DNA from: Ministeria vibrans ATCC 50519
Taxonomy: Eukaryota > Protista > Filasterea
NCBI GenBank assembly: GCA_943704425.1
Contig: CALSCP010002457.1
Coordinates: forward strand, 1-64,000
Direction of reading: 5' to 3'
Length of the DNA stretch: 64,000 bases
Part shown: positions 5,743-10,123 of the stretch, piece by piece
Layout of the letters: every line of letters begins with the position of its first letter
Numbering within the stretch: the stretch's first letter is position 1
Made by a program: the position numbers and the translations under genes
Notes under the pieces: generated by a model
What the model was told of the DNA's origin: nothing
Databases searched by the model: none
Seen by the model: the letters and a program-made list of their open reading frames with translations, nothing else

Positions 5743-7758
5743 TCAGACATGACGAGGCGTGAGCTCAAAAATCAAATGACATTCTTCGGAACCTCTATTC
5801 CAGGAAGCGTGGGGGGCGGATGCATTGATAAAAGCCATACCAAACTGCGGCAAGTCCGAAGGTGCACTAGATGTCTTAGCATTGAGTGTGATCGAGCCGA
5901 CGAGCTGAAGCATGAGTACAATGTGAGAGTCGACATGAAACGGCGGCTGCGAGTTGACATGCGGTTTGCAGCTAATGGCAATGTTCACCTCATCCAACTG
6001 ATGTCGAACCACGCGACTGTAGCCGTTTAAGTCTAACAAACGTAACTTGGTCACCCGGCGACGTGCATCATCAAGAGAGTTGTCGAGTAAAAATAACGTG
6101 TCGCTTGAGCAAATAGTCGCCGGCAACGTTGCACCAACAACGTGCGTCTGCATGCGCACACACATATACGCGGCATAACCGTTGGTGGCATCATCCTCAG
6201 CCACAAAGACAGCATGACTCACGCCTGCGCCAACCATAACGATGTCGTGTCGTTTCAAGAGCACCCACTGCTCCACACTGGTCTGAACAGATCTATCAGG
6301 TAGGCCACTGGCGTCGACGGTACTGAGCAGTCTGAACACAATCATGCCTGACAACACGAAAAAGATTTCCTCATCGCCATGGTAATGGAGACCATGATTT
6401 TGCTGGTGTGCAGCACTTTGTTTGGTCACGTGTGCATGAACAAAGTCCCAAACAGGTGTGCTCACGTCCATCATGTGCAACTGGCACTTTTTCGAACAGG
6501 GAGTCTGAAGAAAACCCGCGAGGCGATTATCAATACGGAGTGTTTCGTCAGTTTGCAATGGCCGCGCATGACCACCATGATCTGGAACGTCGAGCTGAGA
6601 CTTTTCGAGAGACTTGCCTTGATGTAGGCGCACTGTGTCCAAATCAAGAATGTGATTGAGAGGCCTGCTGGGCGTGCGCCTGGCAAAAACGTCGGAGCGA
6701 ACACGCACGACAGGAGGAATCAGAGCCGCGTATTTGATGTGCTCAGCAGCATCAAATGTGAGTGGCTGACGAAGGGCACACTTGTTGGCGGCAGCGAACT
6801 GTGCAATGATGCTGTGACGCGGGGCATTGGTAGGGTTAATGACACCATGCCAAGTGCGTCCCTGCCACATGACAAAGTCACCGTCAGAAATAGAAACTTG
6901 CACAGCTTCCGCATGTGGCACTCGTGTTGTCAGGTATTCAGTGAGTCGCTCGGTGGCTGTGTGAAATTGGGCAGGAGTCTGGCCCTTGGACTTTGGCAGC
7001 CCTGGAAGAGCATCTTGAGCCATTGTAGGCACATAGTGAGATTGTCGAAGGACCCAAGGAGAGGTGCCCAAGTCGGGCGACACATTCTCGATGGCAATCC
7101 ACACAGTCACTGTCTCCCAGCAATCGAATACATTTACATCTGAGTGCCAGCGATGAACTTGGCCGGGATCACGGTCCAAAAAGTCAATGCCTTGAAGCAC
7201 AACATCGTCGTGGGGATCGAGCACAGCACGTACAGCGCTCACAATGGGCTCCTGCAAAGCAAGCTCGACGCACCCTGGCATGTACGCTGCGCAGCTTTTC
7301 AGCCAAGGCTCGCGAGCAAGCCCACGTTGCTTCCAAGACCCTTTATAAGCACCACGAGTGGATGTTCCGCTGAGACGCATCCACGTGTCATAGAGAGACC
7401 AGGCGTCGTCGCGTTTCGCCTTGGTGTTAAGATTTGACTGGAACACATCGCTGAAGCCGTCGCTCCAAAATTTGGTACACAGCGTGCTGTTCGTGCTCGT
7501 CTCGCATCGACTGAGGGATGCTTTGACAAGATCTGGAAGGTGGGCGACTGGAACTCGATCGGGTGACGACCGAGAAACGGGAGCATCAATAGCTTTGGAC
7601 GCGGAGATGGAGACATCCAGCTGAGCGACAGATCGCGCAGGGAAACGATCCAAGGGGAGCGACTCGTGCGGCGAGGAGGGCCAAAAATGAAGTGATAACA
7701 CCACAAAAGTGGCCAGAACGATCAGGGACGCGAGACTCTGACGACACGAGACACGCAT
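5743..7758 (-). CDS. Signal-anchored PhyH-family 2-oxoglutarate/Fe(II) dioxygenase fused to two cupin domains (671 aa, intronless)
   Basis: N-terminal TM (LASLIVLATFVVLSLHFW). PhyH motifs WHSD, VTVWIAIENV, GDFVMWQGRTWHG, R..IIAQF. Cupin 1: HYHGDEEIFFVLSG...GAGVSHAV. Cupin 2: FHVDSH...INASAPHASWN. Confidence 0.8.
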   Translation of the reverse strand: MRVSCRQSLASLIVLATFVVLSLHFWPSSPHESLPLDRFPARSVAQLDVSISASKAIDAPVSRSSPDRVPVAHLPDLVKASLSRCETSTNSTLCTKFWSDGFSDVFQSNLNTKAKRDDAWSLYDTWMRLSGTSTRGAYKGSWKQRGLAREPWLKSCAAYMPGCVELALQEPIVSAVRAVLDPHDDVVLQGIDFLDRDPGQVHRWHSDVNVFDCWETVTVWIAIENVSPDLGTSPWVLRQSHYVPTMAQDALPGLPKSKGQTPAQFHTATERLTEYLTTRVPHAEAVQVSISDGDFVMWQGRTWHGVINPTNAPRHSIIAQFAAANKCALRQPLTFDAAEHIKYAALIPPVVRVRSDVFARRTPSRPLNHILDLDTVRLHQGKSLEKSQLDVPDHGGHARPLQTDETLRIDNRLAGFLQTPCSKKCQLHMMDVSTPVWDFVHAHVTKQSAAHQQNHGLHYHGDEEIFFVLSGMIVFRLLSTVDASGLPDRSVQTSVEQWVLLKRHDIVMVGAGVSHAVFVAEDDATNGYAAYMCVRMQTHVVGATLPATICSSDTLFLLDNSLDDARRRVTKLRLLDLNGYSRVVRHQLDEVNIAISCKPHVNSQPPFHVDSHIVLMLQLVGSITLNAKTSSAPSDLPQFGMAFINASAPHASWNRGSEECHLIFELTPRHV

Positions 7759-7980
7759 GGAAGCAACAAAATGAATAAAAAATATTATTATAATAATAAT
7801 AATAATAAAAAGTAATAATAATAATAATTATTATTATTAAATCATTTTAACTCATGATGAACGGCTCTTATGGCTGCAACTCTGAACTCAAATCACACTC
7901 AAATGAACCAAAACCAAAAATTCGATTGGGATTTGGAAGATGATCTATATAAACCATTGTAAATGATTACAGATTCAGAT

Positions 7981-9836
7981 TTAAGTTTTAATACAGCTCT
8001 CATCACCCTCTTTACACCACGTGCGTAGATCGGTCGTATACGTTGGATTCCACCCATTGTCACGTTTGCAGCGATTGTACTCAATACGCAAATCAGTGCC
8101 GTGTAGAGAGAACTTCGCTTCCATATAGTCGCGTGGTTTCTTTTTAAGCCCCTTGTATCGCTGGGGTCCCCTACGGTTAATAGTTTGCACACGGTCATTC
8201 GGCTCCAAGACCAACGTGCGATAATCAGGTGTCGCAGTGCCCGCGATGATATTGCAATCTACTCTGACATGGTACGAGCTCGACTGGGCATCCCACGTTG
8301 CGCGTGCCTTCCCTTTCACATGTCCGTACTGGCATTCTCCCCCAGTCAGTGTAAAGGCATGCACAAGGGGTACGGTAGACTGAGTACAATACACGGCCAG
8401 AAAGGCAGAAAAGACGACTGCCACGACAGAGAGGATTAGAATCTTGCGCCATTCGACGGTGACGGGCGTAACGGTGGGAGGCGCGACGAGTCGGTTCCGA
8501 GTCGTCCTTTGCCCGTCGCCATTGGCGACAATCCTCTGAAGTGGCCGAAGAAAAAAGACGAAAGTGTTACGAGGATGGTTTGTGTAATAGATATATACTC
8601 TCTGCTCACCTGTGAGTTGGGCGGAATGTTAACTGCCTTGAACGGCCACAAGGGTGGCGAGTCCTTTCGGACAAATAGAAACTGTCCAATATTGGCGCTC
8701 TCAAGAGATAATTGCGGAAGAGTGAGTCGACCGCGCACGCATGTAGGCGAAAGGTGACTGTAGCCGAGCTTGAGCATGATTGAATTCATGCACTCGCGCA
8801 GTTTCTCTTGAACATGGCCCACCGTCGCCCAATTGCACAACTCTCCATCTGACTCACCGGCAAAGGCAGTTGGGTTTGCGCACCACAGCACTTCCTGCAT
8901 CGCCATCGAGAGCACTGTCCCTTGCCATGCCGTCCCTATCAGAGCCGAGGTGTTACTGAGCGACGCTCCGATGAACTGGTACGACGGGCGGTCGTATTGT
9001 TCACGCCACGCCACATCAATAAACGCCTGTGCCTCGTCTGGAACGAAGCAGTCGGCATTCAGAGCCGCACCAGCGGAGCATGCATCTGCAATGATGAGCA
9101 GGTGGCGCCAGCGTGATAGGAGAGTCAGGTCGAATAGTAGTTGCGTCATGGTATACCCTCCGGCGACCTTCTCTTTTTCGTCTTGATAAGTAACACTGGC
9201 GGCGTTGAAGGCGAGGGTGAAGCGTCCCTCGTCATCCTTGAAACCGTGGCCGACAAGATACACTGTCAGCTCTGTGTTGGTGTTTGCAGGGCCCTTGTGT
9301 TTGTCGTCAAGGGTGGTGGGCTTCGCCATTGCTGCCGCGCCAATGCACTCAATGATGCTGGTTTGTGGAAGACAAGGCACTGACTTCCACAGAAGACAGC
9401 CTTTGTTCTCCGCTTCGACCGCAAACTTTGCGCGTCTCGATTCCTCCGCCTCCTGCGCCGGCGTCAAGTCCGGCTTCTCCCCAAAGAATGACGTCGCGTC
9501 ACCGTACGGCACTGATCCTGCGCTGAGGGCCTTGTCGGTGACAACGGACACAAGGTCGTATCCGTTCTGAAGCATCCCAACGGCGGTGTTGCGAGCGGCA
9601 ACCAAAGCGCCAGGCATGTCGCAGAAGTAGGGTTCGGGTGTCGGTGTGTCCGCATCACGCCTTGCGCGCTGGCTGGTTGCGTCATTGTAGCTGCAGCGCG
9701 CAATGATGATGCCTTGTCGATACGTTCGTCGCAGACCATCGATCCCTGAGAAACACCCGGTGAGTAAAAGGCTGCTACATCCATGACACACATAATGAAC
9801 TACAAATGCTGCGACGGCAGGTGGGGCTGTACTCAT
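7981..9836 (-). CDS. Membrane-anchored caspase-family (peptidase C14, metacaspase-like) protein: caspase domain, TM helix and ~135-aa ectodomain; exons 9836-8610 and 8535-7981, ~593 aa
   Basis: C14 motifs YRQGIIIARCSY, MPGALVAAR, VYLVGHG (His), LIIADACSAG (Cys), and p10-like FIGAS...GTVLSMAMQEVL. Intron 8609-8536 (CAG|gtgagc...cacttcag|AGG) is phase 0 and splices in frame into the 7981-8424 ORF through WRKILILSVVAVVFSAFLAVYC. Confidence 0.75.
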
Positions 9837-10123
9837 AGAGAGGGCAACAAAGGACAATTCCGGGCGCGTCAAAAAATGACAGAAGCAGGAAAGCCACACA
9901 CGCCGGCTGACGGCTCACGGTTGACGGCTGTACGCGTCTGGATCATCAATCATGGGTGTTCTTACACAATTGATCAGCGCCCACAGCGGAAAAGGCAGTC
10001 ATTGAAAAATTATTGTCGATTTTGATTTTCGACGGATCAATCAACAAAACTGTGTGTGTGTGTGTGAGCGAATAAAAAATTAAAAGACAAAAGTTATTTT
10101 ATTTTTTTCTTTTCGTCATCGTC

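Follow-up and report, generated by a model that had tools for sequence, protein, structure and literature searches.

A spliced, transcribed gene of Ministeria vibrans predicts a caspase-fold protease head joined to a transmembrane helix

Introduction

Among prokaryotic orthocaspases and type I metacaspases, transmembrane (TM) helices are common, and the designs include some that run from a p20 domain through a TM helix to an outer WD40 or CHASE2 sensor (PMC7475262, PMC10896300). The characterised eukaryotic metacaspases and paracaspase are soluble or lipid-anchored and none has a TM helix; TbMCA4 and CrMCA-II have been located at membranes by experiment and lack such helices (PMC10896300). TM helices have been predicted, rarely, in some uncharacterised type I metacaspases of unicellular green algae (Auxenochlorella, Picochlorum) (PMC10896300). 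Here we describe a gene of the marine, single-celled filasterean Ministeria vibrans ATCC 50519 that is predicted to join a C14-like protease head to a TM helix and a short C-terminal tail. It lies in positions 1 to 64,000 of contig CALSCP010002457.1 (assembly GCA_943704425.1), a 64,000-nucleotide (nt) stretch referred to below as the window. A first-pass annotation of the window had called the product a receptor-like caspase and had set it against characterised eukaryotic caspases, metacaspases and paracaspases, described as soluble. This premise holds roughly for characterised enzymes, which are soluble or lipid-anchored, and is too strong if extended to the predicted green-algal ones.

The layout of the predicted protein, a C14-type head with His and Cys, one TM helix and an outer C-terminal domain in that order, is that of the prokaryotic TM orthocaspases. 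It differs from these in two spliceosomal introns common to its paralogues, in a head that stays below the profile threshold, and in an outer domain that is an orphan rather than a known sensor. The green-algal type I metacaspases are another case of eukaryotic C14-type proteins for which a TM helix is predicted; judged by their description they are recognisable type I enzymes, whereas the head reported here is far more divergent and NLR-associated, and its splicing and expression were checked. Compared with Yca1, TbMCA2, AtMC4/9 and MALT1, the head shows 8–14% sequence identity, and the protein lacks a Pro-rich or zinc-finger prodomain, death or Ig domains and a recognisable p10 sequence; the Asp of helix alpha-1 also seems absent. 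In PIGK/GPI8 (family C13, the membrane-anchored caspase-fold subunit of the glycosylphosphatidylinositol transamidase), a signal peptide is present, the head is lumenal and hardly anything lies past the helix, whereas the protein described here has no signal peptide and 134 residues beyond the helix. The caspase-like–NB-ARC–TPR or –WD40 STAND (NLR-like) design is known also from bacteria and fungi. The STAND proteins of the M. vibrans genome carry a homologous head, and the window protein differs from them in having no NTPase switch or repeat sensor and, in their place, a TM helix and a short tail.

Gene structure and transcript evidence

The gene is on the minus strand, and its three exons (Table 1) give a spliced product of ~564–575 residues that is predicted to be a single-pass membrane protein. 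In the first-pass annotation, two open reading frames (ORFs) were joined by an intron: the first runs from 9836 to CAG/GTGAGC at 8610/8609 and the second from TTCAG/AGG at 8536/8535 to the TAA at 7981–7983. As exon 2 closes on a codon boundary and exon 3 comprises 184 codons plus the stop, frame arithmetic makes this join in frame.

Contigs from four public runs (X1, X3, X5 and X19) were mapped onto positions 7400–10600; such assembled contigs conceal rare transcript forms. X1 (record 2, 1913 nt) and X3 (record 9, 1870 nt) span the whole gene and skip exactly 8536–8609, with GT..AG borders on the minus strand, and the X3 contig ends in 23 nt of poly(A) at 7960, ~20 nt past the stop. Both runs come from one study, labelled organism A. 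The skipped 74 nt have the GT..AG pair, a pyrimidine tract and a GC content of 0.41, AT-richer than the exons. A contig of DNA run X19 continues uninterrupted across them, and the unspliced DNA is also present in a metagenome scaffold (L028, 99.8% identical). X1 and X3, for which the index merely guesses 'RNA', behave as cDNA, because the intergenic stretches 7828–7934 and 9968–10074 are uncovered in both and because the intron at 10356–10481 of a neighbouring cathepsin gene is likewise spliced out in both. These results demonstrate that intron 2 is real and is removed from transcripts, in agreement with the first-pass annotation. The transcript-contig depth of the gene is similar to that of the neighbouring PhyH gene.

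Identity of the protease head

A six-frame search of the genome returned 31 matches to the head, the gene itself counted. The 30 others comprise four full-length paralogues with 53–57% identity, two partial copies (L006 and L007) and ~24 further matches with 26–33% identity, which sit N-terminally in very long open frames. Pfam was run on seven of these long frames: five contained NB-ARC plus TPR arrays, one contained NB-ARC plus WD40, and one gave no match. The homology between the head and the NB-ARC-linked heads spans the whole length (25–26% identity, E down to 4e-12), and two full-length NB-ARC paralogues exceed the Peptidase_C14 cut-off, with 23.9 and 27.6 bits.

Fifteen aligned heads were collinear from the first to the last strand. 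Gly167, Asp220, Cys222 and Gly225 are invariant among them and His166 is nearly so, being Arg in paralogue L014; the window protein retains all 23 invariant columns. The His-Gly (codons 9248–9243) and Asp-Ala-Cys (9086–9078) dyad described earlier is present in the sequence. Around the Cys, the classic metacaspase/orthocaspase motif, LDTCHSG, is found in the NB-ARC-linked members, and ADAC(S/N/T)AG in the window subfamily. Individual matches to PF00656 were obtained for seven of the 15 heads at E <= 0.1 (best 7.8e-7), together with stray weak matches to C13 and CHAT of the same clan (PF01650 was touched by two of the 15, at E 0.05). A profile of the 15 heads gave noise alone against PDB sequences, the best being caspase-2 p18 at E 1.5. 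Against 5.8 billion proteins (8000 candidates scored) it recovered two fragments of the same organism from metagenome and run assemblies, a result of little bearing on distant kin.

The AlphaFold2 model built with the 15-head alignment had a mean predicted local distance difference test (pLDDT) score of 80.4 and a predicted template modelling score of 0.88, and placed His166 and Cys222 at the ends of two central strands. Foldseek of this model ranked Yca1, MALT1, the Candida and Trypanosoma metacaspases, caspase-9 and legumain at the top (E ~1e-5), with PIGK among the matches. In the ESM atlas, 29 of the 30 nearest clusters were PF00656 Peptidase_C14, of bacterial families, a further likeness to the prokaryotic TM orthocaspases. 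Clan CD peptidases carry the catalytic His-Gly and Cys at the C-terminal ends of two central strands (PMC4357240); in the model, the alpha/beta caspase-hemoglobinase fold is present and His(-Gly) and Cys end two central strands. Based on the paralogues, the alignment, the AlphaFold2 model, Foldseek and the atlas, we conclude that the head is, as judged from sequence and model, a clan CD, C14-like protease domain with an intact dyad that has diverged below the Pfam threshold. The caspase/metacaspase domain of the first-pass annotation is therefore borne out by fold and paralogues, and not by a direct match to the Peptidase_C14 hidden Markov model, which gave none at E <= 1.

In metacaspases, the acidic S1 pocket involves two residues of TbMCA2, Asp95 on helix alpha-1 and Asp211 two residues before the Cys (PMC4357240). 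Asp220, at −2 from the Cys and equivalent to Asp211, is invariant among the 15 heads. It had been proposed that the 'NDA' motif reads 'VAA' here, and this fits the spacing from Gly45 to Gly61-Tyr62 on manual reading. A second candidate for the motif, Asn52-Thr53-Ala54, was dropped, as the same spacing favours Val48-Ala49-Ala50. The parts that define the metacaspase types are a Pro-rich or zinc-finger prodomain (type I), a long p20-p10 linker (type II) and a Ca2+-binding Asp cluster. The window protein has no prodomain, since it starts 2–13 residues before the first strand.

Paralogues and the modular family

Both intron positions are common to the four closest paralogues (L002, L003, L004 and L005), and what follows intron 2 varies. 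A module of ~440 residues stands there in L002 and L005, and also beside a more distant head on contig C2596 (L002:1973-3310, L005:159-1424, C2596:39130-40227). Another, of more than 1000 residues, is found in L003, L004 and C837 (L004:2672-4114, C837:27467-28822). Pfam gave no credible family for either module type, and neither type has a membrane-grade segment by hydropathy. The two recurrent C-terminal modules, which are unrelated to each other and stand behind close as well as distant heads, are candidates for sensor or effector domains. Paralogues with variable ectodomains, for which a genome search had been suggested, are not supported: the copies carry other C-terminal modules and no membrane helix.

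In the tree of heads, the window gene and four others form a clade (100/100) whose stem branch is long (3.0) and which groups with the heads linked to NB-ARC in the same genome (97/98). No terminal branch within the clade is longer than that of the window head (0.61 vs. 0.15–0.47). A pattern scan for the five close paralogues through 185,579 prokaryotic genomes found no close relative, although this is a weak test. Because the introns are shared, the nearest kin are in the same genome and the scan returned no close prokaryotic relative, the horizontal origin suggested in the first-pass annotation is not supported, and nothing points to a recent transfer. The TM gene is a one-off in a modular, lineage-specific family, and the sole member found in its subfamily with a predicted membrane anchor.

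Two of the copies show irregularities. In L006 (C2170:11597-15211) the head ends after ~195 residues, just before the Cys strand; a P-loop-like ORF (GDKGVGKT) comes next in a different frame, and truncation or recombination may have produced this copy. L003 (C2822:42053-43174) has one in-frame TGA inside the head match and ADTC in place of ADAC, and may be a pseudogene or contain an unrecognised intron.

5′ end of the gene

The first-pass gene model had the exon 2–exon 3 join right and missed a second intron. X3 additionally skips 87 nt (9746–9832; donor ATGA/GTACAG, acceptor CTCAG/GG at 9746/9745), which gives the protein N-terminus M-R-IDGLRRTYRQG. In X5, an older run labelled organism B, 9966 is joined to 9745 from an upstream mini-exon, with 220 nt skipped; here ATG 10002 opens the in-phase N-terminus MTAFSAVGADQLW-IDGLRR, i.e., MTAFSAVGADQL-W-IDGLRR with a phase-1 donor. 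The X1 form retains the 87 nt in frame and corresponds to the 31-residue N-terminus (MSTAPP...CFSG) of the earlier model, which is intron 1 read-through. Conservation among the paralogues starts at, or one residue from, IDGLRR, just past the pyrimidine tract and AG, and stop codons lie just upstream of the shared acceptor in L002, L003 and L005. A similar candidate mini-exon with a phase-1 donor occurs 250–280 nt upstream in four of the five paralogues checked. The N-termini of the spliced forms are short and polar. With so few residues before the protease fold (2–13), the usual protein would have no signal peptide and would begin nearly at the first strand.

X1 differs from the window at 9827–9828 (C>A and T>A on the plus strand), which are donor positions +5/+6 of intron 1, and this is the contig that retains the intron; strain variation may affect the use of this donor. 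In transcripts that use the donor at 9832, ATG 10002 opens an upstream ORF of ~19 codons, which closes with a TGA near 9945 and might serve in translational control.

Transmembrane helix and C-terminal tail

Searches and folds were made with the exons separately. A Pro-rich linker of ~45 residues connects the head to ILILSVVAVVFSAFLAVYC, whose Kyte-Doolittle 19-residue mean (KD19) of 2.74 makes it the sole segment of at least 1.6 across exons 2 and 3. Single-sequence AlphaFold2 of exon 3 placed a helix at residues 29–52 (pLDDT 80–91), so the WRK-ILILSVVAVVFSAFLAVYC segment proposed as a TM helix is upheld by both measures. Its N side bears Arg and Lys (+2), with additional Arg upstream, and the 15 residues on its C side are uncharged. 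The absence of a signal peptide together with the positive charges on the N side predicts that the head is cytosolic and the tail exoplasmic. From sequence, the likely topology is N-in/C-out, in keeping with the type II single-pass layout of the first-pass annotation as far as the spliced forms are concerned.

The tail was determined to carry five Cys in the 132 residues from Ser53, with a net charge of +7 and no N-glycosylation sequon. The domain of ~135 residues with five Cys that had been described is thus present at ~134 residues, and it is beta-rich in a low-confidence model alone. No usable match to exon 3 was found in the ESM atlas, and Foldseek of the tail model against solved folds gave no match below E 0.1. 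Two long repeat proteins that matched exon 3 in HMMER were set aside as compositional (PT/V-rich repeats, 17 stretches). Exon 3 had no match at the paralogue loci by tblastn in the three sense-strand frames or by blastn; a frameshift origin from a paralogue module is therefore not visible. The codon fit of exon 3 to local usage is best in its own frame of the six, by a modest margin, and GC content at third codon positions (GC3) is 0.53 in the tail vs. 0.63 in exon 2.

Within its own genome, the tail matched nothing but a 65-nt exact fragment beside an assembly gap. This stretch (8323–8387, where the TM helix passes into the tail) has a 100% identical copy on contig C817 (L020:1504-1568), which adjoins a run of N amid unrelated adaptor-complex-like coding sequence and probably reflects an artefact of assembly or a very small duplication.

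Interpretation

Taken together, the locus is a real, expressed three-exon gene for a C14-like head, one predicted TM helix and an orphan five-Cys tail, and its product is probably a membrane-tethered protease. The head is a diverged copy of a caspase-like 'effector head' that this genome fuses to NB-ARC-TPR, NB-ARC-WD40 and other modules, and the module placed here behind the conserved phase-0 intron is a predicted membrane anchor with an orphan tail. The head would face the cytosol, with the tail outside the cell or in a lumen, and in the most likely reading the protease would be switched on when several heads come together in the plane of the membrane. This mode of activation is proposed from the rule for initiator caspases and MALT1, which are activated when their heads are brought together, and from the logic of the NLR-type paralogues.

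A number of observations weigh against this reading. Searched by itself, the head matched no Pfam family at E <= 1, Peptidase_C14 included (gathering threshold 21.4 bits), no chain among PDB sequences (phmmer) and no protein in a word-indexed set of 5.8 billion; its C14 kinship is transitive, through the paralogues, and structural. The position of TbMCA2 Asp95 seems to be Ala49, and Thr or Ala in aligned paralogues, by manual spacing from Gly45 to Gly61-Tyr62. Apart from its own metagenome ORF, the tail had no relative among 1.84 billion representative proteins in an exhaustive HMMER search; its AlphaFold2 model is of low confidence (pLDDT 57, seven weak beta strands), and the sole other copies are 99.8% identical, L028 differing at 4 of 2018 bases, too few for a selection test. 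At the RNA level, intron 2 is backed by two runs from a single study, the intron-1-retaining contig gains a mildly hydrophobic N-terminus (KD19 1.67), the topology was read from hydropathy and flank charge, and activation by clustering is drawn by analogy.

A plain tether, in which helix and tail would only position an ordinary C14-like protease near membrane-proximal substrates, is a possible though doubtful alternative. Membrane localisation of metacaspases that involves no sensing has been documented (PMC10896300), and the tail has no recognisable binding fold. TbMCA4 and CrMCA-II are likewise membrane-associated, but the window protein would have a true helix in place of a lipid anchor. 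However, a Cys-containing tail of 134 residues exceeds what an anchor needs, and the nearest kin of the head are receptor-type proteins.

A further and unlikely alternative, that of the first-pass annotation, is a receptor and protease in one chain, in which the tail would bind a ligand (self, microbial or viral) and dimerise so that the cytosolic heads cross-activate, leading to a death or immune response. The layout matches the sensor-TM-protease designs of cyanobacterial orthocaspases (PMC7475262). Elsewhere the head family is joined to NLR-type sensors, and MALT1 and caspase-9, both activated as dimers, are among the nearest solved folds. Five Cys in the tail would fit an oxidising compartment. 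The tail is small, orphan and poorly predicted, however, with no repeats or known binding fold, and no paralogue combines a TM helix with a varied ectodomain, so that there is no repertoire. It is improbable, in our estimate, that the gene is a eukaryotic one-chain 'death receptor plus protease', in which the orphan outer domain would detect a cue at the cell surface and, through clustering, directly turn on the cytosolic protease. If true, this would be the membrane equivalent of the many NLR-type receptors with caspase heads in this genome, evolved within a protist and not borrowed from bacteria.

It was also considered that the gene could be a young chimera or a decaying copy, in which the ancestral C-terminal module behind the conserved intron was lost, exon 3 is recent or de novo, and a transcript is produced although the tail, perhaps the protein, has little or no function. 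An exon 3 that has no relative anywhere, every paralogue frame searched included, would agree with this, as would the long end branch of the head, the GC3 of the tail below that of exon 2 and the low confidence of the tail model. Several findings speak against it and leave it rather improbable: a frame of 184 codons ending 20 nt before the poly(A) site is expected by chance about 1 in 7,000 times (an estimate, (61/64)^184), every invariant family residue is kept in the head, the codon fit is best in frame 0 of the six, and transcript depth is like that of the PhyH gene. Finally, an exoplasmic, PIGK/GPI8-like protease, in which the N-terminus of the intron-1-retaining isoform (MSTAPPAVAAFVVHYV...) would be a signal peptide, the head lumenal or extracellular and the basic tail cytosolic, is very improbable: X1 contig record 2 holds 9746–9832 in frame, the KD19 maximum of 1.67 lies in the retained segment and PIGK is among the fold matches, but the MSTAPPAVAAFVVHYV segment lacks a basic n-region, is broken up by His and Tyr and, with stop codons immediately before the acceptor in L002, L003 and L005, is not conserved; the TM helix has its positive charges towards the head, and the head, with its many Cys, shows no sign of secretory design.

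A eukaryotic caspase-fold protease on a true TM helix, spliced and expressed, would be a test case for membrane clustering as a driver of this fold, which is assumed for bacterial orthocaspases. One protist re-uses a single, very divergent head, joined across a conserved intron to NB-ARC-TPR, NB-ARC-WD40, two modules of no credible Pfam family and, here, a predicted membrane anchor, which suggests that this genome is suited to studying the modular assembly of cell-death or immune receptors. Standard Pfam annotation would overlook the gene altogether.

Feature coordinates and neighbouring sequence

Table 1. Coordinates, in the window, of the features of the caspase-like gene.
Feature	Positions	Strand	Details
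Alternative 5′ mini-exon, coding part	9966..10002	minus	ATG 10002-10000; MTAFSAVGADQL plus 1 nt; donor TGT/GTAAGA, joined to 9745; X5 joint
Alternative start, ATG plus A	9833..9836	minus	Donor at 9832 (ATGA/GTACAG); yields M-R-IDGL; X3 joint
Intron 1	9746..9832	minus	87 nt; 220 nt with upstream donor 9965; kept in frame in the X1 contig
Exon 2	8610..9745	minus	2 nt plus 378 codons; predicted caspase-fold protease head and first part of linker
Predicted caspase/hemoglobinase-fold domain	8652..9743	minus	Residues 1-364 of exon 2
Predicted catalytic His166-Gly167	9243..9248	minus	Immediately after strand 158-165
Asp220-Ala221-Cys222	9078..9086	minus	Predicted catalytic Cys after strand 214-221; Asp at -2
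Intron 2	8536..8609	minus	74 nt, GTGAGC...TTCAG, phase 0; skipped in X1/X3 contigs, present in X19
Exon 3	7960..8535	minus	184 codons, TAA 7981-7983, ~20 nt 3′ untranslated region, poly(A) site near 7960
Predicted TM helix ILILSVVAVVFSAFLAVYC	8386..8442	minus	Exon 3 residues 32-50; KD19 2.74 and AlphaFold2 helix
Orphan C-terminal tail	7984..8385	minus	134 residues

The divergent cathepsin gene (10127–10600) lies 290 nt upstream. Its contig depth is 40–100 times that of the caspase-like gene, and its intron at 10356–10481 is spliced in three runs.

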